Shown here in pieces: positions 1 through 64,000 of a stretch of DNA of 64,000 nucleotides. The translations under genes and the position numbers were made by a program. The DNA lies in the NCBI GenBank assembly GCA_002104905.1, contig MCFE01000420.1:14152-78151 (forward strand), in the 5' to 3' direction. The notes beneath the pieces were generated by a model, which made no database searches, had not been told where the DNA came from, and saw nothing but the letters and a program-made list of their open reading frames with translations. The DNA is from Basidiobolus meristosporus CBS 931.73. Lineage: Eukaryota > Fungi > Basidiobolomycota. How positions within the stretch are numbered: position 1 is the first letter of the stretch; the number at the start of each line of letters is the position of its first letter.

Positions 1-899
1 TTCCATCTTGGCAGCAAGGATACAGCATTGGCTACCTGGTATATTAATTACTCTAAATGTTTTATTGGCTCATCCTGTTTCTGGAATATTTCCAGATTAC
101 CCTGCACCATTGCATCTATCTTATCAGCCACTGCAACTAATTACCTTGTTAGTGCTCTGGTATAAGTTGACAACATACCTGCTAATATAGGTGGTGGTGA
201 TGATATGACGGCCACTTGCTGGTCTTAAGCTAAGAGTACTCTCATTGCTATATTCTCATATGCATGGGCATTATGGTCAGCTTGTGACTCCACAGATATT
301 CTCATTGACCTACCTGACTGAGAGCCTGAGGAGTCTGCATTGTTACCTTAGGTGGGCACACTTTCAACATAGCCATTTTTGATGAGGCCCTGCTTGCTGC
401 ACTGAGTTTCACAGCAAGCTGCTGTCCAACCATTCTTCTGCTGCTTTCAGCAATTGGGTTTGTTTGGGAACCAGACAACTTTGTTTTTTTTTGGCAGCAT
501 ATATGTGGAAGTGTGTCAAACCAAAGGGGAAATAGTGTTAGATATACATGTGCTTGTGGTGCCACAACCCTATCTATAATACCTACAATGGCAGGTCATC
601 ATTGATTCTTATATTCATTTAGGTGCAATATCTCAATTCCAAGACTGTCTTAAATTCATATCAGTATTGTCCAAAATGTAGTATAATACCTTTAAGTTAC
701 TGAGTGTCAAATGGTTTGCTCTATACTGAAGACTACTATGATTCAATGCCTGCAAGAGAAGAGAAAAAAGGCCATGTGCTATTGTAACAAGCTTCTCAGC
801 CATGAAGCATATAGAGAGTATAGGAAGTATTGAAAGGACTATGGAGAGTGTTTTGTCACACAAGTCATATTTGTCCATTCTTCAGTTGCTGCTGTACCA

Positions 900-3800
900 A
901 TCATATCTTGCCAGCCGCTTGATAATTCTATATTGGCACCAAGCCATACTTGTCACATTATGGAAGCTGATTACGGTGAGCTTGTGATGCACTTAGACTC
1001 TCCTGAGCCTTCTGAATATGGCATACAGAGTGATTGCTTTGAAGAAGTGGGCTCAATGATGGATTGGGAGCTTATTTCCCCTAACACCAGTATGCAACTT
1101 ACCTTGTACATGGTACACATGGACAACTGTCATGCAGCTGGCAGCATATGACTTTGAGACTATTCTGATACCAGCATGTGGAAACAGTTGCATGGCTTTC
1201 ACATCAGAAATTGCCACCATTGCAAGGTGTCAAACTTGTCAGGAATCCCCACAGTTGGAGGAAAGCATTGTTCACACTGCAGATATATTCCATTAATACC
1301 TTGTCTAAATAAGTCCATGCAGTCCAACCAGTGTTTTGACTCCATAAAGTACCAAACTCAGTATCAATCTAGCACAAACCTATATAAGCTATTAAGTACC
1401 ACACTCAGTATCAATCAAGTACAAACATATCCAATTTATATGATAGCAAACATTACAAATAACTATGTAGCAAGGGCTACTTTGAAGGTATGTATGACCA
1501 TGCCTTTGCCTTGGCACTTGATGTATCTCATTAAACAAGTACTCTACCAGCAAATCCTGCTGGCCACTGATTCTCATGAACCTTAATCAGCCACATATCT
1601 TACAGTATCCAAGCACAAATCTGATGGTATTCTTGCTGATAGCTGGGCCTAAAACACCATCCAACCAGGACAGCCACCTGCATCCATTGCCAGATGTATC
1701 TTGTATGCTTTCCAGCAGGATACTACTAGCTGGCCATCATATCAAAGAACATATTGTTATCTGCAATTGAGATACCCCAGCCATCAGCAGGATAGCTGGC
1801 TTTTCTGGGCACAATAGATGGTATTGGTGTCAAATGTGTGAGATCCAGGGGACCTATTTCATATCTCACACACATTATTGTCAACCAAATACCAACACTG
1901 AGAATGTCATCTTCCCATAGAAGGAACATACAGAAGTTGGTATGCAACTGCAACAAAATTGGCAAGCTTTAAGCCATTGGCCCTGATATGGAGTTAATTA
2001 GAAGCTGGAGATACTTATGATAAAGGGTATCTGTGGGAGTAAAAGCTTTCATGAGGAGCAATGCACATGCCTTTTCAACAATATCACTATACTAATTACC
2101 AAGTTTCACATGGGGCATTTAAGCTGAATGAGCCCTTTGAGATGCCAGAGAAGCTTGAAAGAACTGGCATGATACTACAGATATCCACCACCTGAAGCAT
2201 TGCAGACAGGCTCCAATCAATATTTATGTGCATATGCAACAATGCAAATCTCTGCTGCTACTGTGACCATTCTCTGCTCCATCTTACTTTATGTGTGGGA
2301 TATTATGGGCCTTACTTCAGGTTTGGGGAGTTCCCTATGAAGCAGATGTGTAGGGAGATAGGAAAACAAGTCAAGTTGGAGGTACTACCATATCCTAGTT
2401 TCATCAACAATATTACCTTCATGTCTGTCATGGATGCAATGAGCTGGCATATGCAGGACAGCCAGGAAAAGTTGGGAAATGCTGAGGACATATGTGCACA
2501 TGGTGATACTTGTAACTTTAGCATTAAGAAGCTCAGCAGCCCCAATGTATGGGTAATCAGTTAGGTAATAATAATATGGGTTGTGTGCAAGAAATAACTA
2601 ATCTTTATAAGAATAACTCCACCAAAGTATGCCTGGTTTCTTCTGGTCATGAGACAATTTCAACACCATTCCATATGGAATTTGCACAATCAGGAGCCAG
2701 AGCTCACCTATAAGGGGACTAGAGCTTGGTAATGACAAGGTATAGATTGGTTAAATTCCAGGAAGTTCTCATGCCTTTAGCATTGAGAAGCTAAGCAGCC
2801 CCAATGTATGTTTAATCTAATAGGTAATGGAAAGTTGGGTTAGGTGCAACAAGCAACTAATTTATATTAAGACAATTTTACCCAAGTATGCCATATTTCT
2901 CCTGGTCACATGCTAATTTTTATGCCATTCAATACAGAACTCATATAAACAAGAGCCAGAGCACACCAATAAGGGGGACTAGAATCCAGCAGGGAGAAGG
3001 AATATATTGGCTAAATACCAAAAAGTTCTTTGCAGATATTCAGGAGGTATTCATGGCAAAAGTGGTGGCAACAAAATATATGTTTGCAAGATGTATATGT
3101 TACCAGCAATATAAGGTATATGGCAACTTTGCAAGTATCACACTAAAAGGCTGTAAAGTTGATATGATAGACATATGTCAATTGCAGCAGGTGTGCACAT
3201 CAGTGGAGGTTAGCAAGTAGGAGGCTATAGTATATTTGATTCAAACTATATGTGGGATACCAAAGGTAGTTGTAGGTTAGTAAATAAAGAGGGGTAATTC
3301 TACAGTGGAATATATGAATTGTGCAAGGGGAGGTAGAAAAAGGAAATACCATTTGGTAAATGGGTACGGTAGTATTACACACAACTAGCTGTAGGCTGCC
3401 ATACTGCTGTAATAATGCCATGAGAAGCTTGCAATAAGGCCATCAAAACACTGCTACATTGTTTGCCATATAAGGCAACTGGATGTACTGGCCAATTGGA
3501 TCCACTCAAATAGTTGTAGAGTGCACCAAGACCACAACAATGCCATGCCACCCTTGGTAAAATATCATACAAACACTGTTATGTTTTTAACTTTATTTGG
3601 CTGTAAAATTAGCTAAACACTGTTGTGATTGCATCATAAGATTGTGTAGATGGTACTTCTATAATGGCACCTGGCCATACTTGTCACCTTGCGCAAATTG
3701 AGTCAGGTGAGTCTGTGACCCCTTTAGGCTCACCCCAGCCTTCTGAATATGGCATGCAGAGTGATAGCTCTGAAGAAGCAGGCTCACTGATGGTAGTGAG

Positions 3801-5029: not shown

Positions 5030-7158
5030 TCACTTCCTTCCGGGAACAGGAGTTTTCAGATACCTTCTGGGTTCCCCTGCAGTTTCAATAATGATCAATG
5101 AAGACAACATCATCAAAGCTGGTGTAAGGTTCCTAGGTGTTGTGTTTGGCATCATAACCTTTCCACTTGACTAAATAAAGGCAATTTGGTTCTTCTCCAT
5201 CATGGTCAACAATAGCTTCAACTTCATAGGATTCAGAAGTAGCTAGGTCTTGAGATATAAGTTTGAGTGAAGAAGGTGGAAAGTTTTTGGGTAGCAGTGC
5301 TTGAGTACTGTCCTGAAGTACATAAGATCCTCCAGTGGTACCTCTAACAACTTTGAGTGGGCCTTCATATTTGGGGTCAAGTTTTGAATGCTGGATTGGT
5401 TCTAATGTCATGACATATGACCCATCTGGAAAGCTTCTGCTCATGTGTCTTGAGGCATGTGTTGAAGTCATCTTTTGCTATGTGGCCCTACCTCTGGCAC
5501 TGATAGCAGGGTAGACAATGTTTGTAAGGTACTCAGGCCAGTTCTTTAACTTGTCTCTATTCAAACTTGCTAGCTCTGTATTTGGGTAGTCCCCAAAATG
5601 GCTGTATCTTCTTCCAAACATCAAAGAAAATGGCGTTGATCCATGTAGAGTGGCAATATTGGTGTTGATAGCATACTGTACAGTGGGTATGTACTTGTCC
5701 AAATTCTACTTGATACCTTTGATAGATTTCCTGATGCTGTTCACTGAGGTCTGAACATGTCTTTCAGCAAGTCCATTAGCTTTTGGATGATATGGAGTAT
5801 TCATATGGTGATCAATGGCGCTATTCTTATAGAGGGCTTTGATCACATGATTTACAAATTCTGTTCCATTGTCCTATTGAATGACCTTAGAAAATCCAAA
5901 AAGGCAGAGGAGCTTGAATTGTGTTCATGCAATAGTGGCAGCATAGTTGTCTGGGATAGCTTTGAGGAGTACAAAACATGTGCGGACATCCACAATTACA
6001 AAGAGGCAGTGATTACCATCATTGCTAGTGGTGAAAGGACCAGCTGGATCAATTGCAATATGATCAATAGGAAGGCTTGCATGGATGGGACTCAATGGGT
6101 GAAATCCATGGCGGTTGATATTGTAAAGCTGACATTCTCTGCTAGACTTGACAAATTCTAGGCAGTCAGCTTTGATATTTGGCCAGTGATATCCATCAGA
6201 GTGTAGCTTCTTCATAAGTGTGTCAGCTCCAAAGTGTCCATGTAGATGACTCCTCTGTATCAACATTTTTCTTTCATTGGTGTGTGGGATTTTCCTGGTT
6301 GCTGAATGCGGTTGAGGAGTAAATTTGGAAATTGTAGTGAGCTTACTCATTACATCAGTAATTACATGTCCCTCCCAAGGAGAAGTTGGGAAAAGTCTTG
6401 AAAGGTGCCCAGGCAGGATGTTGAGGATTCCTGGGCAATGAATAACTGTATATTCATAATCAAGTAGAGTATCAAGCCAGTTAGTAAGCATTGCAATCAG
6501 AGTCTTTTGAGTTTGGACATAGACAAGGGCTTGGTGGTTGGTGTACAAGATAAAAGGATCACCCCATAAGTACTGATGAAACTTCCTCAAGGCAAAGACT
6601 ATGGCAAGTAGCTCCATCTTGGTGACAGAGTAGTTTATCTCAGCAGGTTGTAGGGATCTGGCTTGAAAAGAGATCCAGTGAGGTGGATTTTGGTCTTCAT
6701 CCTGGTATAGGACAGCCCCTAACCCAACATTAGATGCATCCATAGCAATAACAAAGGTCTTAGTAAAGTCTGGTTTGGATAGGGTGGGTGCCTGTGAGAG
6801 CAACTGGCAGAGTGACTCAAATGCTTGGTCATGAACCTTGTTCCAGGCTGAGGGAAGATTAGGACTATGGCATATTGCATCCAAAGGGGCACTCAATGAG
6901 AATGTGAGTGGAATGTTCTCCCTGAAATAGCTGAATACTCCAAGATAATGTTGGAGTTGCTTAGCACTAGTGGGTCTTAGCCATTCAGGAATACTTACCA
7001 GTTTGAAAGGATCAAGCTGGTGGCCATCTGGTGTGACAATGAATCCAAGTAGATTAATTTTGAGGTGGGCAAAGCTGCACTTTTATGCATTAAGAATCAG
7101 TCCAGCAGCTGTCAGTCAATTGATTAAATCAGTGACATGGGTTGCATGATCATCACGG
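5030..7158 (-). pseudogene. Gypsy pol remnant: RT C-terminus, RNase H, integrase, chromodomain
   Basis: ORFs 5925-6896 (LSKPDFTKTFVI, YSVTKMELLAIVFAL, HLHGHFG, YHWPNIKADC), 5478-5702 and 5133-5471 (chromodomain); frameshifts and stops. Confidence 0.9.
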
Positions 7159-8229
7159 TGTAGTGGGGTGACAGTGACACCCACTGACAGATGTGCTCAT
7201 TCCCTTATTTTCTACTTCCCTATATCTCTACTACACTTATTTTAGTTTTATCCCATTTGTCTTACCCAATCAGTACTATCCCATAAGCCGGTTGACTATC
7301 ACACCTGCTTACCTTATTGCATAAGTTAACCCTCACTTTATGTAAGATTACTAGCTATAAGTACTTCTATATTAGGCAAGTACCCGCGCCAGTACCTGTG
7401 ACACATGATCAGCCCGTGTCACCATCCCTACCATTTCCATACCATATATGGTATCCCCATGTTACACAGGTTTCAGAATACTGATTCCTGATTGGTTGGA
7501 TGTGCTGTGCCTCTTAGAACCTTCCGGCACCTACTTAGAACATTCTTAGGTCATTCTGATGTCATTAAGATTTCTATTGATCTCCGGAACCTTCTGGAAC
7601 ACCATGATTAGTAATCACTTAGCCAGTGAGAAAAGTATATAAGGGAGGCTATCCCTCAACAATAAATCATCATCCCTTTTATCAATATACCAACTTGTTG
7701 ATTAGTGTGATCACTGCTACCTGCTGCTACCTGAACTTCCAACCCTAGACCACAGGACACCCCCAGGAAACCGCGCTGACAGCCAACTGACCTTGGAGGC
7801 ACTACTTGTGAGGAATACTCAGAGTAGGTATATTTTATTATATTTGATTCTTTCCCAAGTTTGTTCTCGTACAGGCAAAGATACTTTTCTGTCTTTGTAA
7901 CTATTGACCACAGCTGCATTCTTATCAAGTCCCTGCTGGTGGAGTTTACAGTTGTTTTGACTTTGGAAGCTTTAGTACATTGTCATCTCAATGGACGCTG
8001 AACCCAGCACATACTTTTGTTAAGATGCCAACTAAGTTGGGGATTGTAGCTCAATAGTTTTCCCTTGACAAGCTTGTGGCTTTATTCCCCTTCACATTAG
8101 ATTAGAGACAGAACCCAAGTATTCCTAGCAAGCTTTTGCCAGAGGTTATTGCACCCAGTGAACACCCCACACACAAAACACTTGAGAAGTGTTGGACATA
8201 TCTCTCCCTTGGACCTATACACCACCACA
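7159..8229 (+). mobile_element. Solo LTR family B (copy B1) inserted in gypsy A RT
   Basis: TGTAGTGG...CACCACA termini; 4-bp TSD ACGG at 7155-7158 and 8230-8233. Removing it restores the RT frame VDDVIIFSTHRDDHATHV. Confidence 0.85.
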
Positions 8230-8233
8230 ACGG

Positions 8234-11190
8234 TGTGTGGAAAATATGATGACATCATCAACAAATACTAAGGCCTATGGTGTGTTCTTAAGTATTATAG
8301 TCATGGCTCTCTGGAACTTGCTGATCAGTGTCTTTAGGCCAAAGGGAGCTCCCTGAAACATCCATTGCATATTATTCCAAGTAAAAGCAGTCTTATGCTG
8401 ATGATCAGGATGGATCTGGAATCAGTGATATGCATCCTTCAAGTTCAATTTAGAGAATACTTTTGTGTCCAATGGTGAGGAAAAGATATCCTGGATTCTT
8501 GGAATTGGAAATTTGTCATCTTGGAGAAGCTTGTTCAGAGGTCTAGGGTCCAAACAGGGTCTCTTCAGAGTTAGATTTCCATCAGCACCTTTCTTTGGTG
8601 CAAGTGTCAAAGGGCTGTTGAATGTTGTGTTGACAGGGGCTTGAGTGATAATTCCATTGTCAACCCACTTTTGGACTAATTCATCAACTAAGTGTTGACA
8701 AGAATGCAGAATTGGGTATTGCCTCCTCCATGTTAACTCACCAGGTGGGGTTTCTAGTACAACAATGGATTCTGGAATAGTGCAGAAACTGTGCCTGGGA
8801 ATGGCTTGGTTTCTTTCTATGGCCAGCTGAATTTCCAATTTGATTGATTGAGAATACACTTGAAAAGGTGGGGTTGACTCCTCTGCTTCTGGATGGGGAG
8901 AGATAATCTCTGGAATCTGATCCATTCTGGGTGGCTGAGACTTAGTGATTCCAGGATATGAAACTGGTTGTCTGCCTATGTGAAAGTCAAGTTTGGAGAA
9001 GGCATATAGACCAATGACTACCTGAGGTCCATCTGGAATGTCAATAGCTTCCATCTGATGGATTATAGTTATTGAACCACAATGTATGCTGATTGGGTTG
9101 GTGATGCCAATTCTTGGGGCTGAGAGGTCCTTAGCCGCAAGTATGATTTTTCTTGGTTGCTTTTCTATTGCCAATTTGAGTTCCTTGACTACATTAGTTG
9201 ATACAATAGAGTTGGATGATCCAGTTTCCAGTAGTGCTACATATGATTGGCCATTGAGTTTGAGTGGCAGCTCTATAGCTTTTAGCTGCACAATTGGTTG
9301 TTTCTTTTCTTGAACAGTTGCAATTTTAGCCAGAATTTCAAAGAGGTTGTGACAATCTTGAACTGCAAGTTCTTCATATGCTTCCTCATACCCTGTCATA
9401 TCATTGGTTGAATGATCATCTAGAATCTGAGTAATTTTTGCCAATGGTGTAGAGCTCTTCTCAGGACAGGCAGGTGATCTATGTCCCATCTTTCCACATT
9501 TTAAGCATTTGTCATCAGCATATGGATTATCAGTTTTGGTGTTTTGCTGCTTCTCTGACATGTTTCCTGACTAGTTTGACTGCTTGGTGATGCCTTTCAC
9601 TCACTGGTAGAATGATAGCATCTTCCATGAAGCTCACAACACTTGCTAGCGGTTGACTTTGTCTTGGTCATATGACTGCTCTCTTTTCCGGTTGTTGCTG
9701 CATCTTGAATGGAGATACATGAAGCCTGGCTAACAGCTGCAGGCATGGTGATTGCAAGTGTACATATCTCTGAGATTTTGTCATAGGTACGTGCAGGGTT
9801 ACATGCTTTGGCAATTGCAATATTGCTCTGTAGCTGGTGTGAAAAGTTTGAAAGAAAATGAGAATTAAGCAATGGATTATCATCACTAACTTTGGTTATT
9901 CTCATTTGTCTTTGGAATCTATCACAGAAGTGTTGCTCAAATTCACCTTTTTACATTTTAGTTTTCCATCAGTTGCAGTTTAGATGCACTTTCTTGACAG
10001 GATCTTCAGAATGGCCACAAAAGAGGTTCTGGGCAACTTTCCATGTACTAATGGAAGGATTGTTCACCTCAACCCAGTCAGCATCTTTCATGGTAAAACA
10101 GAGAGGTAGAAGTCTAGCCCAATTGGTGTCAGGTTCTAACTGGTGCATAGCTAAGACATGACTAAACTTGTAAAGAAACTCAGTGGGATTCTTTATGGCA
10201 TTAGCTCCTTCAGCATAAAGAGGCAAGGATCTTGGGACACCACCAGGGTAAGTCTAGAGGGAGATGTAGATCTGGAGGATCCAATGGCATGAATTCTTGG
10301 TGGCTGATGCAGAGCAAGGCTTGGTGGATTTTCAATGCTGTCAATTACAATGGCAACATTCTCCAGGGCTTCTTTGATAACTCCAGTTTCATCTTGGTAA
10401 CCAGAAATAACTTGTAGAAATTCATCTCTACAATGTAGTGGGGTGACAGTGACACCCACTGACAGATGTGCTCATTCCCATATTTTCTACTTCCCTATTT
10501 CTCTGATACACTTATTTTGGTATATCCCATTTGTCTTACCTGATCAGTACTATCCCATAAGCTAGTTGACTATCACACCTGCTTACCTTATTGCATAGGT
10601 TATCCCTCACTTTATGTAAGATTACTAGCAGCAAGTGCTTCTACATTAGGCAAGTACCTGTGTCAGTACCCGTGACACATGAATAACCTGTGTCACCATC
10701 CCTAACATTTCAATACTGTATATGGTATCCCTATGTTACACAGGTTTCAGGGTACTGATTCCTGATTTGTTGGATGTGCTGTGCCTCTTAGAACATTCTG
10801 GCACCTACTTAGAACATTTTTAGGTCATTCTGATGTTATTAAGACTTCTATTGATATCTGGACAGAACCCAAGTATTCCTAGCAAGCTTTTGCCAGAGGT
10901 TATTGCACCCAGTGAGCACCCCACACACAAAACACTTGAGAAGTGCTGGACATATCTCTCCCTTGGACCTATACACCACCACAACAATGATTGCCAGATC
11001 TTGTCTTGGCAAGCTTTGAGTGCTCATGCATCAAAGTGTTTCTTTCATGCATGATGTTTTCAAGCTGTTCAGTTAGTTCTTCCTGATTTCTGTGGGTTTC
11101 CTTCAAGATGGAAAGATTTGGATTGCTTGCTGCTGAGGAAATATTGTAGCGGGGTTGAATATAATAGACTTGTTCCATCATTCCAGCCAA
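8234..11190 (-). pseudogene. Gypsy gag-protease-RT N-terminal remnant
   Basis: ORF 8422-9561 has a zinc knuckle (CLKCGKMGHRSPAC), protease and RT start (RPCLDPRPLNKLL). Gag pieces 9597-11190 match 56801-58117. Confidence 0.88.
10434..10983 (+). mobile_element. Solo LTR family B (copy B2, internally deleted) inserted in gypsy A gag
   Basis: Same termini as B1; TSD ACAA at 10430-10433 and 10984-10987. The rejoined flanks match the uninterrupted gag near 56945-56970. Confidence 0.85.
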
Positions 11191-38437: not shown

Positions 38438-40587
<2,150 letters not shown>

Positions 40588-56063: not shown

Positions 56064-59000
56064 TGTTGTGCATCAACATTTAAAACTTAGCCAATTTTAC
56101 TCTGTTTGAAAATCTAGTACCCTAACTGCTTTTCCCTAACCCAAACATAACAAATCCCATTACAGTTTATTTTTTCCCACCTCAGAATCTATTTTTAGCT
56201 ATCACACCTGATCTATTTTAAATGGTCATTACGTTATCAACCTATCTGCCAAGCCTTCCCAGGTGATTAGTCATCTGAGATCTATCCAACCACTGTGCAG
56301 TTGCCAAGACATCAGTTGATTGATGATGTAATTTTCATTTATCTTATGCACCTATGAACACCCAAATTGATTTCAATCAATCCAGTCCCTTGGCACTTAC
56401 TAATTCAACTTGATCAGAAAAGTATAAATAAAGTTTACTGAACCTTTTGGTTTAGTGTGTGTCTCAACAAAATTAAGATTCTGTCTCAGCAAAAATAAGA
56501 ATCCAACAATTCCGTTCTAGTTTCTATCCAAGCCTAGTATATCTAGCACTCCAAAGAACACCTAAGCCTAGCCTGCCTAGCAAACAAATATCATTGTCTT
56601 TATAGCCAACCCAGCTATATCCAAGTCCAATATTAGATCAGAATCTTTCTGCTAATATTTCTGCCACTCTCTGACAATTCTAAGATTCTGCACTTAATTG
56701 TCCCTTTGGTTCAGTTAAACCACTCAAGAGCTTTTATTACACTTTCTCTTGGATACAACATTTTTTTTGTTGAATTCCATTACATTCAGCTGATTAGAAG
56801 ATGTCCTCAGCAGCAAGCAATCCAAACCTTTCCATGTTGGAAGAAGCCAGAAGAAATCAGGAAGAACTTACTGAACAGCTTGAAAACATCATGCTTGAAA
56901 GAAACACCATGATGCTTGAGCACTCAAAGCTTGCCAAAACAAGATCTGATAATCACCGTAGAGATGAACTTCTTGAAGTTATATCCGGTTACCAAGATGA
57001 AATTGGAATAATTAAGGAAGCACTGGAGAATATTGCCATAGTAATTGACAGCATTGAAAATCTGCCAAGCCTTGCTCTGCATCAGCCACCAAGAAGTCAT
57101 GCCTTTGAATCCTCCAGATCTACATCTCCTTCTAGACCTGCCCCAGTGGTTGTCCCAAGATCCTTGCCTGTTTATGCTGAAGGCACCAATGCCATCAAGA
57201 ATCCAACTGAGTTTCTTTACAAGTTTAGTCACGTCTTACCTGCACACCAGCTAGACCCTGACACCAACTGGGCTAGACTTCTGTCTCTCTGTCTCACAAT
57301 GCAAGATGCTGACTGGGTTGAAGTGAACATTCCTTCCAATAGTACGTGGAAGATTGCCCAAAACCTCTTTTGCAGCCATTTTGAAGATCCTCTCAAGAAA
57401 GCACATCTGAACTGCGACTTATGGAAAACTAAAATGCAAAAAGGTGAATCTGTGCAACACTTCTGTGATAGATTCCAAAGACAAATGAGATTAGCTGGAG
57501 TTAGTGATGATAATCCATTGCTTACTGCTCATTTTCTTTCAAACTTTTCACACCAGCTACAGAGCAATATTGCTATTGTCAAAGCATGCAACCCTGCACG
57601 TACCTATGACCACATCTCAGAGATATGTACACTGGCAATCACCTTGACTGCAGCTGTTAGCCAGACTTCAGGCAACTCAACCCAAGATCCCACAACAGCC
57701 GGAAAAGAGACCAGTCATGTGACCAAGAAGCAGTCAACCGCTACCAAGCACTGTGAGCTTCATGGAAAATGCTATCATTCTACCAGTGAATGCAAAGGCA
57801 TCACCAAGCAGTCAAACAAGTCAGGAAACACCTCAGAAAAGCAGCAAAATACCAAACTGATAATCCATATGCTGATGACAAGTGCTTTAAATGTGGAAAT
57901 ATGGGACATAGATCACCTGCCTGTCCTGAGAAGAACTCCACACCATCAGCCAAAATTACCCAGATCCTTGATGATCATTCAGCCAATGATACAATGGGGT
58001 ATGAAGAAGCATATGAAGAACTTACAGTTCAAGATTATCACAACCTCTTTGAGTTTCCGGCAAAAATTGCAACTGTTCAAGAAAAGAAGCAACCAATCAC
58101 ACAGCACAAAGCCATAGAAGTGCCACTCACCCACAATGGCCAATCATACGTAGCACTACTGGATACTGGATCATCCAACTCTATTGTATCACCCAAAGTA
58201 GTCAGAGAACTCAATTTGGAGATAGAAAAACAACCAGGAAAAATCATTCTTGCAGCTAAGGATCTCTCAGCCCCAAGAATTGGCATTACCAACCCAATCA
58301 ACATACATTGTGGCTCAGTAACCATAATCCATCAGATGGAAGTGATTGACATACCAGATTGACCTCAGGTAGTCATTGGTCTGGACACCTTCACTAAACT
58401 TGGCTTTCACATAGGTGGACTACCAGTTTCCTATCCAGAAATCACTAAATCTCAGCCGCTCATAATGGATCAAATCCCAGATTTTATCTCATCCCAACTG
58501 GAAGAAGAAGAGTTAACCCCAACTTTTCAAGAATATTCTCAATCAGTCAAATTGGATATTCAGCCAGCCATAGAGAGAATTCAGGCCATTCCAAGGAACA
58601 GCTTCTGCACCATCCCAGAATCCATTGTTACACTAGAGACCCCACCTGGTGAGTCAACATGGAGGAGGCAATACCCAATTCCGCATTCATGTCAACACTT
58701 AGTTGATGAGATAGTCCAAAAATGGGCTGACAATGGAATTATCACTCAAGCCCCTGTCAACACAACATTTAACAGCCCTTTGACGCTTGCACCAAAGAAA
58801 GATGCTGATGGAAATCTAACCCTGAAGAGACCCTGTATGGACCCCAGACCTCTGAACAAGCTTCTCCAAGATGACAAGTTTCCAATTCCAAGAATCCAAG
58901 ATATCTTTTCCGCACTATCAGGAGCAAAAGTATTCTCCAAGTTGGACTTGAAGGATGCATATCACCAATTCCAGATCCATCCTGATCATCAGCATAAGAC

Positions 59001-59090
59001 TGCCTTTACTTGGAATAATATGCAATGGATGTTTCAGGGAGCTCCCTTTGGCCTAAAGACACTTACCAGAAAGTTTCAGAGAGTCATGAC
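56064..59090 (+). mobile_element. Gypsy family A copy 2: 5' LTR (56064-56760), gag (56801-58117), protease and RT start, truncated at 59090
   Basis: LTR is the reverse complement of 4358-5029; CFKCGNMGHRSPAC knuckle, LLDTGSS protease, KLDLKDAYHQ RT; homology stops abruptly at TTAGGG. Confidence 0.93.
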
Positions 59091-59108
59091 TTAGGGTTAG
59101 GGTTAGGG
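59091..59108 (+). repeat. Telomeric repeat (TTAGGG)3
   Basis: Directly visible, joined to broken gypsy pol. Confidence 0.95.
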
Positions 59109-59600
59109 GGAGGAAAGTTACCAAGTGGTGAAATCTTTATTTACTTATGACAAGTATCTAAAGAAGCCAAGTTAATCTGAAGTTATTCCTAGAAAGCTAG
59201 GTCTGAGAGTTGAAAAGCTGAGTGGTATTATAATTCCTAGTTAGCTAGGTCTGAGAGAGGTTTCCTGGAAAGCCAGGCCTGAGAAGTGAGAATCTGAATA
59301 TATCTGAGCTAAGTTATACTGGTTTGCGGTAGCTGAATTGTGGCCGGAATGGCCAGTAGACTGGGGGAACTGAAATGAATTTCTGGGCAATCACTGGCCA
59401 AATTTACTAGGCAAATCTGGCCAATTAGCATTTCAAGGATTTCAGCCAATCAGAGCCTTTACTTTGCCCAATGGTTGATCAAGCCATCTCCCAATGAGCA
59501 CACATCAATTTATTAATCAAATTTTTGCTGGATCCAGGATTTGAACCCACAACCATGGGTATGGAAGGGTTAGGGATAACCACAAGGCTAAGTGTTCTTG
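59109..59600 (-). mobile_element. tRNA-derived SINE, unit 1 (full head)
   Basis: Minus-strand head 59527-59597 with A-box-like TAGCCTTGTGG and B-box GGTTCAAATCC; 3' end shared with the LINE. Confidence 0.8.
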
Positions 59601-59603
59601 GTT

Positions 59604-60108
59604 GGGTTAGGGGGGAGGAAAGTCACCAAGTGGTGAAATCTTTATTTACTTATGACAAGTATCTAAAGAAGCCAAGTTAATCTGAAGTAATTCCTAGAAA
59701 GCTAGGTCTGAGAGATATCTTCCTGGTAAGCCAGGTCTGAGAGTTGAGAAGCTGAGTGGTACTATATTTCCTAGTTAGCTAGGTCTGAGAGAGGTTTCCT
59801 GGAAAGCCAGGCCTGAGAAGTGAGAATCTGAATATATCTGAGCTAAGTTATACTGGTTTGCGGTAGCTGAATTGTGGCCGGAATGGCCAGTAGACTGGGG
59901 GAACTGAGATGAATTTCTGGGCAATCACTGGCTAAATTTACTAGGCAAATCTGGCCAAGTAGCATTTCAAGGATTTCAGCCAATCAGAGCCTTTACTTTG
60001 CCCGATGGCTGATTAAGCCATCTCCCAATGAGCACACATCAATTTATTAATCAAATTTTGCTGGATCCAGGATTTGAACCCACAACCATGGGTATGGAAG
60101 GGTTAGGG
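59604..60108 (-). mobile_element. SINE unit 2 (preceded by GGGTTAGGG; head truncated at its internal GGGTTAGGG)
   Basis: Tandem copy of unit 1; B-box retained near 60070-60080. Confidence 0.82.
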
Positions 60109-60537
60109 GGGGAGGAAAGTCACCAAGTGGTGAAATCTTTATTTACTTATGACAAGTATCTAAAGAAGCCAAGTTAATCTGAAGTTATTCCTAGAAAGCT
60201 AGGTCTGAGAGATATCTTCCTGGTAAGCCAGGTCTGAGAGTTGAGAAGCTGAGTGGTACTATATTTCCTAGTTAGCTAGGTCTGAGAGAGGTTTCCTGGA
60301 AAGCCAGGCCTGAGAAGTGAGAATCTGAATATATCTGAGCTAAGTTATACTGGTTTGCGGTAGCTGAATTGTGGCCGGAATGGCCAGTTGACTGGGGGAA
60401 CTGAGAGGAATTTCTGGGCGATCACTGGCCAAATTTGCTAGGCAAATCTGGCCAATTAGCATTTCAAGGATTTCAGCCAATCAGAGCCTTTACTTTGCCG
60501 ATGGTTGATCAAGCCATCTCCCAATGAGCACACACAC
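60109..60537 (-). mobile_element. SINE unit 3 (5' truncated)
   Basis: Tandem copy; homology stops at GAGCACAC, then telomeric repeats follow. Confidence 0.82.
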
Positions 60538-60549
60538 TTAGGGTTAGGG
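60538..60549 (+). repeat. Telomeric repeat (TTAGGG)2
   Basis: Directly visible between SINE unit 3 and the LINE 3' end. Confidence 0.95.
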
Positions 60550-60607
60550 GGGGAGACAGTCACCAACAGGTGAAATCTTTACTTCAGTTGAAACAAAGAA
60601 GCCAGCG

Positions 60608-63375
60608 CTACTGTTGTAGCTTTGATACAAGAGTGTGTAGCTGAGGGGAATTTGTAGGTAAGTTAATAAGAAGTGATGATAGTTCTTCAGTGCTCAAGAC
60701 ACTGTTCAGTGGGAAGGGAGGTAGCAAGAGAGGTAAGAATGACTTGTGAACAACATTAATGAGGGGAATGTGATAAGGATTGATATTCATCATAAAGGGA
60801 GTGTGCTGCTGCAGATATTGCTGCCAAAGGTCTGTCAAGTACTTCAGGTAGGCCAGCTTGGGTTTTTCTGACTGCAGAATATAGTGAGCAAACTTCTTGA
60901 CTTCAGGATCTCCAAGTATAGTTCTCCAGCAGGAGCCAGGTGTTGTGTGGTGTGTTCTCTTCCAGGCCTTAATCAGTGGGTTGTTGCAGTTGTGAAGTCT
61001 GAGGTATAATCTGGTTCTAAGGTAGAGAAGTCTGATCTTATAGGGCATAAACCCAAAAGCACCAAGAATAGCATGTCTGTAGGGGCATTCAGGCAAATGA
61101 GGCACCAAGGAGGTAATGCACCATACTGCAAACTTGTCAAGCTTAGTGCAGTCTCTAGAAGTAAGAGAGAGAAGTGGTAAGCCAAATTCCAGGACAGGGA
61201 AGACAAACTGCTTGAGTAGAAGAAGGCAGCTGGGAGCTGAAGTTGTAGGAGGAGTTACAGCCAGTAGCTTGTGGAGTGCCTGTCTTGCCAGGATAATTCT
61301 CTTCTCAGATGTGCTCCAGAGTCTAGTCCAGTAGGAAGGAAAGGAAAGCCAAGATATGTAGCAGAAACCTGAGCAGGTAGAGTGGAGTTCTCCAGGTTGA
61401 TGGGAGAGCCCAAAGGTACTGTCTTTGCAATGGAAAGCTGGAGATTATTCTTCTGCAGATACAGGTGGATGGTCTGGGAGTCTTGTTGCACATTGGAGGA
61501 GGATATTCTGATGTCATCAGCAAAGAGAGTAACCAGGCAGTCAGCTGAGAGTCTTGGGAAATCATTCAGGAAGATGGCAAACAGTATAGGACCAAGCACA
61601 GAGCCTTGAACCACTCCATTAGGAACCAAGAACACAGCTGATTGCTCACTTGGGTGCAGAATTCTTGCTTGTGGATCCAGAAACAGAGACCTGACAAGGA
61701 GGGTGAGAGAGGTACTGGAGAAGCATTGCAACTTGGACCAAAGCAGATTTCTGTCAACTGAATCAAAGGCCTTAGTAATATCAAACAGAACTGAGGGATA
61801 CTTGCACTGGAGAGAGTGATCTTGGCTAAGTATGACTGCATATTCCAAGGAGAGGCCAGGAACAAAGCCAAACTGTGCAGGATGAAACTTGAGGGAGTCA
61901 GAGTAGAGCTCCTGAGCAAGCAGAAGCTCAAACACCTTTCTGCAGGTGGGCAGCAGAGATATTGGCCTGTAGGAGCTAGGATCCAGGTGCTTTCCTTTAC
62001 CCTTGTACAGTGGCAGAACATTTGCAAAGGACCATTCCTCAGGAGTAGAAAGCTGGGCTGAGCATTGTTGAAACAGTGGAAGCAGAAGTGCAGACATGGC
62101 CTTGGTACTAGTCTTCAGAAGCTCATAAGAGATTGTGTCCACACCTGGAGCGGTAGAGTTGGGAAGTCTCTTGAGCACATTATGGATTCTCCCTTGATCA
62201 AGTGCCAGTGGGATGGGCAGAGTCTTGAAGTCAGGATGAAAGCCAGGAGTTGAGTACTGCTTTGTAGAGAAGAAGATGTTAGCCAGCTGTTCTGTTGAAG
62301 GTAACTTCCTGGAAGAGGGCCTCATTGCCCTGTAGAGTCTTGATACTGTTCTTGTTATAGAGTTGGAAGATTGCAGAGGCAAGGAACTCATAATATGATC
62401 CCAGAGCTGAGTATGCAGAGAGTGGTGAATTGCCTTGGAGTGGTGTATTGCTGTCAGGAGGAGTTTCTCTGTTTTTGGGTTAGGGAAACTCAGGTAGCTT
62501 TGTTGCAGGGCTGAAACAATGGATTCCCATTTTCTTGAGGTAACAGCAGTAGTCTTGCATGGCAGTGAGAGGGAGGCAGACACCAGAATCAGATGCTTCG
62601 CAAAGAGCCAGGCATAGTTGAGATCATCTGGCAGAGAAAGTAGCAAACTGGCAAGCTTCAAGTAGTTCCCAAAGTCTTTCTTCTGATTCTTAGTAGCTTT
62701 GTGGGTGAGCACAGTAAGTTTTGGCAGCTTCTTCTTCACAACTGGTTGCATAGAAAGGGACCAGGCTGGGTGGTCAGAGGCTCTCAAGGATCCTAGCTCA
62801 GCTCCAGAGAATTGCTTAACTTCATCCACAAAGTAGAGGGCAGCAGCAGAAGGGCAGATCCAGTCAACACATCTTTTCTCAGATTGAGCACCTAGTGCTA
62901 GCAGATGGCTTTCTCTCAGGAAGTTCAGTAGGAATGTAGACCTTGGCTTCATTCTTGCAGTCAGAGTAGTCTTGTTCTCAGGATGGGGAATGTTGAGATC
63001 TCCAAGCAAGATAATAGGTGTTGATATAGATTGCTGGTATTGCTGAACTTTCTGGCATATAACTTGCACTTCCTGAAGGGCAAGACTTGGAGGCAGATAG
63101 CAGAGCACCAGACTGATAGTTGGCAACTGGAGAGCAGCACAGTAAGGGGAGTAAAGAGGAACACAGAGCTGAGGAGTATTGATGGTAGAAGAGATGAAGC
63201 AGATAGAGGAGGTATTCTTTGTTCTAGGAGTAGAAAAGCAATATAGATTAGTCAAAAGTATAGAGGGTAGCTGGACATCAATCAAACACAGGAGGGAAAA
63301 TCTTGAAAGAAGTCTCTCTAGAGTTGGTCTTGATGGCTGTATGCTGTTGCAGTTGAGCAACAGAACTTCAGGTAG
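60608..63375 (-). CDS. LINE ORF2: APE endonuclease plus reverse transcriptase, with a 1-bp frameshift near 61300
   Basis: LNCNS, YLPP, GDLN, VDWI, SDH; APGVDTI, YRPISLL, QFGF, DITKAFDSV, VQGSVLGP, FADD, YLG. Comparison with 55730-55745 shows a 1-bp deletion; the C-terminus is ORF 60608-61108. Confidence 0.92.
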
Positions 63376-64000
63376 TCAGGCAGAGGTTGTAGCTTCTTCA
63401 GAGGCAGCATTGACAATGTGACCTGCAGAGTCCCAGAGCTCCTCAAATGGTGCATCACTTAAGTCAGCAAGGAGGGAAATGGCATGGTTCTTGAGGAAGT
63501 ATGCCACATCATAGGAGGGGGCTTGTCTCTTGATGGCAGCAAAGAAAGAGAGAATGGCAACATGGGCTGGAGGCTTGTTGAACAGTAGAGAGTCAGAGGA
63601 TTCAGATTCTTCAGGCACTATCTTGAAGTCAGTTTTCAGCCAGTTAAGGTTCTTCTCCACAAAGGCAACAAATGGGTCAGCAATGTTTTGGTCTAGGATA
63701 ACCTCCAGAATCTTCCCTTTTCTCCAGGCCAGGTTGACAATTCTTGAGAGCTGAATATTGCATGCCTTGAGTGCTCTCCTGATGTTGGAAATGGGAGTCC
63801 AGGGAACTTGCTTCAAGTACACCAGAGTCCAGGTAGAAGCTGGTGGTAGGTTTGCTGGGGGCTTGTAAGTCCTTCTGTGTGGCAATGGAGCTGCAGTAGT
63901 CAGATTGGAGTCCACATTCTCAGTAGAAGGTTTTCTTGATGTGTCTTGCTGAATGGTACTGGAGCTGGATGTGCTGATTATTCTTGCTAGAACCTTAGGG
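63376..64000 (-). CDS. LINE ORF1 (C-terminal part; frame open to the window end)
   Basis: LVYLKQVPWTPISNIRRALKACNIQLSRIVNL resembles the RRM-like ORF1 of early-diverging fungal LINEs (from memory); no stop between 63379 and 64000. Confidence 0.75.
   Translation of the reverse strand, partial: PKVLARIISTSSSSTIQQDTSRKPSTENVDSNLTTAAPLPHRRTYKPPANLPPASTWTLVYLKQVPWTPISNIRRALKACNIQLSRIVNLAWRKGKILEVILDQNIADPFVAFVEKNLNWLKTDFKIVPEESESSDSLLFNKPPAHVAILSFFAAIKRQAPSYDVAYFLKNHAISLLADLSDAPFEELWDSAGHIVNAASEEATTSA

Follow-up and report, generated by a model that had tools for sequence, protein, structure and literature searches.

A telomere-restricted LINE and its short non-autonomous partner in chromosome-end arrays of the fungus Basidiobolus meristosporus

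The DNA considered here is a 64,000-nucleotide stretch of Basidiobolus meristosporus CBS 931.73 (contig MCFE01000420.1, positions 14,152 to 78,151 of the forward strand; hereafter the window). Its right-hand end, positions 59091-64000, forms the inward portion of an array at a chromosome end, built by a telomere-specific retrotransposon without long terminal repeats (LTRs), that is, a long interspersed nuclear element (LINE), and by a short, non-autonomous partner, which shares its 3' module and is referred to below as a short interspersed nuclear element (SINE). Genome-wide distribution supports the view that both are restricted to telomeres and lie in one orientation at the chromosome ends of this fungus. 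The best explanation overall, to which a probability of roughly 0.6 is given, is that, where a chromosome end bears little telomere tract or none, the 3' end of its G strand would pair with a telomere-complement tail of the element RNA and prime its reverse transcription.

Organisation of the array in the window

On the + strand the array reads, from the chromosome interior outwards, gypsy pol broken at 59090, (TTAGGG)3GG, SINE, GGGTTAGGGGGG, SINE, GGGG, SINE, (TTAGGG)2GGGG and LINE. All four LINE and SINE copies are antisense on this strand, with their 3' ends to the left, toward the chromosome interior, and on re-reading 59091-64000 both this layout and the common 3'-inward orientation agree with the initial annotation of the window. 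The motif TTAGGGTTAGGG has three matches in the window, all of them in the array (59091, 59097 and 60538), against none expected from shuffled sequences.

The sequence inward of the array is a fragment of a gypsy-type LTR retrotransposon (56801-59090, + strand; Pfam Retrotrans_gag and RVT_1), which runs from gag into the reverse transcriptase (RT) of pol, is broken at 59090 and is capped by the (TTAGGG)3GG tract (59091-59110, + strand) that adjoins the 3' end of SINE 1. Copies of this gypsy element elsewhere (loose ends at 59091; short contigs of the source runs) continue past 59090 with non-telomeric sequence, and the window copy was therefore broken and capped rather than inserted into a pre-existing repeat. 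SINE 1 (59111-59603, - strand) is full length (reference 1-521) and 92.9% identical to the 521-bp reference, and it belongs to a subfamily about 30 bp shorter. The spacer GGGTTAGGGGGG (59604-59615, + strand) separates it from SINE 2 (59616-60108, - strand; reference 1-493, 99.2%), which is 5'-truncated within its own GGGTTAGGG motif (60100-60108). After a GGGG spacer (60109-60112, + strand) comes SINE 3 (60113-60537, - strand; reference 1-423, 98.6%), also 5'-truncated, and then the (TTAGGG)2GGGG tract (60538-60553, + strand) that adjoins the LINE 3' end. In the head of SINE 1 the GGGTTAGGG motif (59569-59577, + strand; reference 485-493 in full-length copies) is likewise part of the element and not of a target; the initial annotation had parsed it otherwise at both places, where it belongs to the SINE's own head. 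Whether target-site duplications are present is masked by the telomere-like sequence on both flanks of every copy.

The LINE (60554-64000, - strand) is represented by the 3' 3.45 kb of its 4.5 kb (reference 1-3444, 98.7%) and is cut by the contig end, window position 64000 being the last base of contig C725 (78,151 bases). Its 3' module (60554-60600, - strand) comprises a spacer, a UCACC-loop-GGUGA hairpin motif and an (A)AAUAAAGAUU block, which reads GUAAAGAUU in the window copy. The second open reading frame (ORF2) is broken into two pieces, compared with a single 917-aa frame in an intact copy: a C-terminal piece of 166 aa (60608-61108, - strand) lies out of register with a larger piece of 701 aa (61255-63360, - strand), which carries an apurinic/apyrimidinic endonuclease (APE)-like domain and most of the RT (Pfam RVT_1 at 2e-24, Exo_endo_phos_2 at 4e-4). 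The C-terminal part of ORF1 (63376-64000, - strand) follows in the same frame as ORF2, with a stop between them.

Distribution in the genome

An exact 30-mer from the SINE 3' end gave 382 forward and 22 reverse matches (at least 404 genome-wide) and an exact 29-mer from the LINE 3' end gave 595 forward and 39 reverse matches (at least 634), while the reversed-word controls of the two gave no match in the genome. Among the matches listed, 100 SINE copies on 63 contigs and 66 LINE copies could be placed. Measured to the contig end faced by the 5' end, the distance is at most 18.3 kb for all 100 SINE copies (median 3.0 kb, 95 of them within 10 kb) and at most 16.7 kb for all 66 LINE copies (median 3.8 kb). 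On contigs longer than 100 kb the maxima are 18.3 kb for the SINE and 14.1 kb for the LINE, compared with a mean of about 85 kb if copies were spread uniformly. The few reverse-strand matches sit at left contig ends (C80, C416 and C291). None of the 166 placed copies occupies an interstitial site. The initial annotation had proposed a telomere-targeted LINE/SINE system at a fungal chromosome end and had named a majority of interstitial copies at non-TTAGGG targets as the pattern that would contradict it; with 166 of 166 placed copies near the faced contig end, the genome supports both the restriction and the single orientation.

Some further features of the assembly concern the chromosomes themselves. 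For both elements about 94-95% of copies are + strand and sit at right contig ends (382:22 and 595:39), although random contig orientation would give about half; the bias probably reflects how the assembler, or the stored copy of the sequence, orients contigs. Contig C479 (312,558 bases) has element arrays and telomere repeats at both ends and may represent a whole chromosome, about 0.3 Mb long, and on C291 (160,813 bases) LINE copies face both ends. With more than 1,000 element ends close to the ends of contigs, the genome may be divided among a great many small chromosomes.

Junctions within the arrays

Array anatomy was annotated in 27 segments without overlap, 89 kb in all, with two natural copies as references. 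All reference-family copies whose 3' end falls within a segment start at reference position 1 and share one orientation, while their 5' truncation is variable. The inner joint of each copy consists of (T)TAGGG plus 3-9 G, whatever sequence lies inward of it. The 69 spacers reach 55 nt at most, with a median length of 12 nt, and next to the element each closes with 3-9 G residues (mode 6). No A or T run of the kind left by a poly(A) tail was found at any of 96 junctions. Outwards, 14 of the 27 segments run into terminal (TTAGGG)n of about 120-250 bp that continues up to the contig end; about 10 of these 14 terminal arrays directly adjoin a full-length SINE, whose last bases (..GGTT) are in phase with the telomere repeat. 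Contigs of a separate 2013 study with the same species label likewise end in telomere repeat plus element tail.

Several properties of the junctions bear on the origin of the telomere units beside the elements. At boundaries with unique DNA there is often a single telomere unit, as on C420 (..CATT, then TAGGGGGGGG), C1013 and C645. An odd 18-nt spacer, GGTTAGGGTTAGGTAGGG, precedes SINEs on C29 and C532 behind differing upstream elements. Variant units (TAGGG, TTAGGGG, TTAGG.. and the like) make up 28% of those in spacers versus 3.3% in terminal arrays (Fisher p=3e-9). Truncated 5' ends share a mean of 1.95 nt of telomere-phase microhomology with the next spacer, versus 0.33 nt expected by our own estimate for random bases; the extremes are 5, 6 and 9 nt, the last being the motif at which SINE 2 of the window is cut. 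Together, the single-unit boundaries, the shared spacer, the variant units and the microhomology point to the telomere unit next to an element having been copied from RNA. Clearly older copies are mostly the inner ones, with exceptions (C781). Preferential 5' truncation at the SINE-internal GGGTTAGGG was also considered and rejected, as SINE 2 of the window is the only such case among the sampled copies.

The shared 3' module and related families

In the sense orientation, the 3' ends of the SINE, the LINE and further families have a common plan: AAAUAAAGAUU, UCACC-loop-GGUGA, 6-8 nt, a run of C and UAA(CCC..). When the SINE and LINE tails are aligned, 31 of 41 positions are identical, with the hairpin and the AAAUAAAGAUU block common to both. 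The C run followed by TAA(CCC) is present at every element 3' end, including those of relatives from other samples, and at least three further families have related tails. The five stem pairs of the hairpin are kept in eight tails from two sources, among which no covariation was detected, and the hairpin is accordingly best described as a conserved motif rather than a proven structure. No ribozyme was matched by Rfam at E<=10 in 59050-60700, the region around these 3' ends in the window.

Five relative proteins with 47-79% identity were found in other samples. Where the contigs available for three of the five reach past the 3' end, they show the same module, then C5-7 TAACCC(TAA) and then other elements. 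As these relatives from other samples end in the same module, the tail is an inherited part of the element. One such contig (L035, 468-529 and 5584-5646) also carries two further short-element tails, in which the shared module has the loops UCCUU and GUCU; judged from this contig, a multi-family system is present in the relative's sample too.

The LINE

An intact natural copy (L032:76-4596, 4,521 bp) has both ORFs open. ORF1 encodes 511 aa, with an N-terminal cysteine-rich motif and a coiled coil, and matched no Pfam family. ORF2 encodes 917 aa in the frame of ORF1, with a stop in between, and contains an RT (Pfam RVT_1 at 2e-22 in the intact copy) whose best match among solved structures is L1 ORF2p; outside its own family, identity is at most 31% over the RT. 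Genomic copies of the LINE (40 scored) are 98-99% identical.

The nature of the endonuclease (EN) at the N-terminus of ORF2 was approached in several ways. On the intact ORF2, Exo_endo_phos_2 scores 21.6 bits, below the Pfam cut-off of 27.4, and a sequence-profile search with the EN domain among proteins of solved structure returned only ExoA (E=2.2). The motifs N..N, YxPP, GDxN..H, D and SDH align with those of Pfam-positive APE LINEs, the first metal-binding motif having changed from E to D in every family member that covers it. An AlphaFold2 model of ORF2 residues 1-240 is mediocre (mean predicted local distance difference test score, pLDDT, 59); its best 50 fold matches include APE1, ExoIII-type enzymes and the ENs of TRAS1 and R1 (probability 1.00, template modelling score 0.35-0.49). 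In ORF2, neither a restriction-enzyme-like (REL) endonuclease (C-terminal CCHC plus PD-(D/E)XK) nor an RNase H was found, Pfam at E<=0.1 giving only the RT and the N-terminal APE. Sequence and model thus support an APE-type LINE, with an N-terminal AP-endonuclease-like domain of predicted activity followed by the RT, and not a REL-type element, in keeping with the identity first assigned to it.

Three further observations concern the organisation of the LINE. Between ORF1 and ORF2 (L032:2884-2901) there are only a single stop and five codons in the same frame, and ORF2 has no AUG near its start, which suggests translation of ORF2 by readthrough or reinitiation. The 5' untranslated region (UTR) ends in tandem repeats, each about 100 bp long and composed of 63 bp of the reference and some 37 bp more, whose number differs between copies (C428:149369-149555, C29:17462-17617). 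Within the same UTR lies a G-strand-oriented (TTAGGG)2 (L032:4477-4488), present in four of the four LINE copies that cover the region.

The SINE-like partner

The partner, with its 521-bp reference, is short, non-coding and very abundant. Two motifs that resemble the internal promoter of RNA polymerase III (Pol III) genes can be recognised by eye, an A-box-like TAGCCTTGTGG (10 of 11 positions against TRGCNNAGTGG) and, about 40 nt apart from it, a B-box-like GGTTCAAATCC (10 of 11 against GGTTCGAANCC); the SINE contains no clear Pol III terminator (T5). The label 'SINE', chosen when the window was first annotated, rests on the LINE-like tail and the A- and B-box-like motifs; a tRNA origin of the head is not supported, as ARAGORN found none, Rfam gave no tRNA at E<=10 and folding yielded a z-score of -0.31.

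The body of the SINE (59150-59330 in SINE 1) is made of about four imperfect repeats of a unit of some 25-45 nt with a small palindrome (CCTAGnnnGCTAGG TCTGAGAG), and the shorter subfamily to which SINE 1 belongs lacks about one such unit. The GGGTTAGGG of the SINE head (reference 485-493) is a G-strand telomere motif near the outer 5' end. Near the 5' ends of LINE and SINE, no CCCTAA occurs on the strand that carries the G-strand motifs, and these motifs may be seeds for recapping by telomerase. Telomerase itself is encoded in the genome: a check for telomerase reverse transcriptase (TERT), already suggested by the initial annotation, located a TERT RNA-binding domain above the Pfam cut-off on C935, and the terminal arrays are regular TTAGGG.

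Proposed mode of addition and its alternatives

In the explanation favoured here, element RNA would end in a run of C and then UAA(CCC...), the complement of the telomere. The 3' end of G-strand DNA would anneal to this tail by a few bases and be extended by the LINE reverse transcriptase, and the primer could be provided by an eroded or very short telomere, by a chromosome break or by the cDNA 5' end of the previous element. The hairpin/AAUAAAGAUU module is the probable recognition site of the enzyme, through which the SINE could be copied in trans. Telomerase or the next element would then recap the newly made outer end, a step that the telomere motifs in the SINE head and in the LINE 5' UTR could seed. 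Short spacers, single-unit boundaries and microhomology would all be expected because the G-strand 3' end primes on ends with little telomere tract.

A number of points weigh against G-strand end priming. The catalytic motifs of the APE domain are kept in diverged members, with E to D as the sole change, which suggests that the nuclease is in use; copies placed by a G-strand nick would have the orientation observed. Endonuclease-dependent LINE insertion, as in L1, likewise yields microhomology at 5' junctions. The 3' end of the RNA is deduced from DNA alone, and the contig of the window ends inside a LINE, with its own terminal telomere out of view. When copies are compared by age in pairs, the outer copy is the younger in 40 pairs and not in 31 (p=0.22), and the order that pure end addition would predict is thus not significant in this sample.

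This lack of a significant age order would also suit insertion of the TRAS/SART type, in which the APE would nick the G strand of duplex repeats, perhaps with a preference for the TTAGGGGG junction of an existing copy, the 3' hydroxyl would pair with the RNA tail for target-primed reverse transcription, and the flanking units would be target or target-site duplication. An APE fold with motifs kept in members only 43-55% identical in the domain, the observed orientation, which a G-strand nick predicts, and the telomere-like sequence on both flanks of each copy are all compatible with such a scheme. It is the main rival, but is considered rather unlikely. Spacers are nearly all shorter than 35 nt, whereas terminal arrays exceed 120-250 bp, and the median and maximum spacer lengths are not expected from random insertion into arrays of about 200 bp; some junctions with unique DNA hold a single unit, and no placed copy is interstitial. 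Retention of the endonuclease is not decisive in this respect, as TART keeps its APE yet adds to chromosome ends.

Two other explanations were weighed. Arrays might have spread mainly by DNA copying between ends (break-induced replication or unequal recombination) or as template-jump concatemers, with few independent retrotranspositions. A full-length SINE + AGGGGG + SINE junction shared by five contigs, a LINE truncation at position 311 common to C451 and C1046 and the 98-100% likeness of copies are what such spread would produce, and recombination contributes some share of the arrays. As the main process it is improbable in view of the many differing truncation points and neighbour combinations, the one spacer found behind differing upstream elements, the intact LINE copy with both ORFs open and the relatives with the same tail in other samples. 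Far less probable still is an assembly artefact, with repeats misjoined to the contig and the array not at a chromosome end at all. The contig does end inside a repeat, and the source-run sequences are short contigs, none of which spans the array, but the same architecture recurs on dozens of contigs, the terminal (TTAGGG)n closes 14 of the 27 sampled arrays, C479 carries an array at both ends, and the contigs of the separate 2013 study end in telomere repeat and element tail.

If G-strand end priming is extended to a general scheme, B. meristosporus would possess, beside telomerase, a second and retrotransposon-based system for adding to chromosome ends, in which an APE-LINE and a dedicated Pol III-type SINE supply telomere-complement RNAs that are copied onto short or broken G-strand ends, with TTAGGG seeds for recapping. 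This wider proposal is tentative, with the odds slightly against it. If true, it would represent a convergent, LINE-based version of the strategy of the Athena and Coprina elements, and the partner would be the first telomere-specific SINE.

Relation to known telomeric retroelements

Among APE-type elements, TRAS1 and SART1 (R1 clade, Bombyx and other insects) are also LINEs confined to telomeric repeats in a fixed orientation and coexisting with telomerase. They differ in having poly(A) tails and in being placed in long TTAGG tracts after a sequence-specific nick, whereas the Basidiobolus system has no poly(A), a telomere-complement 3' tail, a short median spacer (12 nt) and a fungal host. 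HeT-A, TART and TAHRE (Jockey clade, Drosophila) resemble it in their head-to-tail terminal arrays of one orientation, their variable 5' truncation and their combination of autonomous and non-autonomous partners, and TART retains an APE domain. Drosophila, however, is without telomerase and its elements have oligo(A) ends, while Basidiobolus has TERT, terminal TTAGGG arrays and a short non-coding partner. Outside insects, Tx1-1_ACar of the anole lizard and Zepp of Chlorella are L1-like APE LINEs associated with telomeric repeats (PMC10088271). Their hosts, a vertebrate and a green alga, set them apart from the fungal pair. To our knowledge, neither has a SINE partner or a telomere-complement tail.

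The endonuclease-deficient Penelope-like Athena and Coprina elements attach to G-rich telomeric overhangs via reverse-complement telomeric repeats at the RNA 3' end (PMC8557442). They share such repeats at the element 3' end with the Basidiobolus pair, and Coprina is found in fungi; they have a Penelope-type RT, no endonuclease and hammerhead ribozymes, in contrast to the LINE-type APE and RT of the Basidiobolus ORF2 and the absence of an Rfam ribozyme match at E<=10. MoTeR, FoTeR and Cnl1 belong to the CRE clade and have a C-terminal restriction-enzyme-like endonuclease (PMC12857005). MoTeR1/2, FoTeR and Cnl1 are, like the present elements, fungal telomere-restricted non-LTR elements, and MoTeR2 is a non-autonomous partner, but their endonuclease is of the REL type, whereas the Basidiobolus LINE has an N-terminal APE and no REL motif was found in it. 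Lists of telomeric retroelements include SART/TRAS, GilM/GilT, Zepp, MoTeR, Tx1-1_ACar, Athena and the Drosophila elements, and no SINE (PMC10088271, PMC4700185). A literature search for Basidiobolus, telomeres and retrotransposons found no paper linking them, nor was a fungal report found of a telomere-only LINE and SINE ending in telomere repeat instead of poly(A). With the known fungal telomeric LINEs (MoTeR, FoTeR and Cnl1) all of the REL type and CRE clade, the comparison supports the Basidiobolus pair as a type for which no fungal report was found.

Telomere-specific retrotransposons are the main natural link of mobile elements with telomerase, and those known are insect elements of the R1 and Jockey groups, CRE-type elements of ascomycetes and Cryptococcus, and endonuclease-free Penelope-like elements. 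An APE-LINE, a telomere-complement 3' tail, several families with one 3' module, an abundant short partner and a telomerase gene have not yet been seen together. The system comprises at least 1,000 element 3' ends, at chromosome tips wherever they were placed, and offers a tractable case of how a LINE reverse transcriptase picks a DNA 3' end and of whether retroelements can heal broken chromosomes, a question illustrated by the gypsy element, with its break and cap at 59090.

Other features of the window

Far from the array, a second LTR-retrotransposon fragment (5925-9561, - strand) carries an aspartyl protease, an RT-RNase H and an integrase zinc domain. The subtelomere is gene-bearing: a Senescence-domain protein, a ThrE-family exporter, GFAT and two ABC transporters are encoded in 26045-52760, about 7-35 kb from the array. 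The GFAT gene (38614-40587) has 95% identity to that of Basidiobolus ranarum and about 80% to those of other early-diverging fungi.

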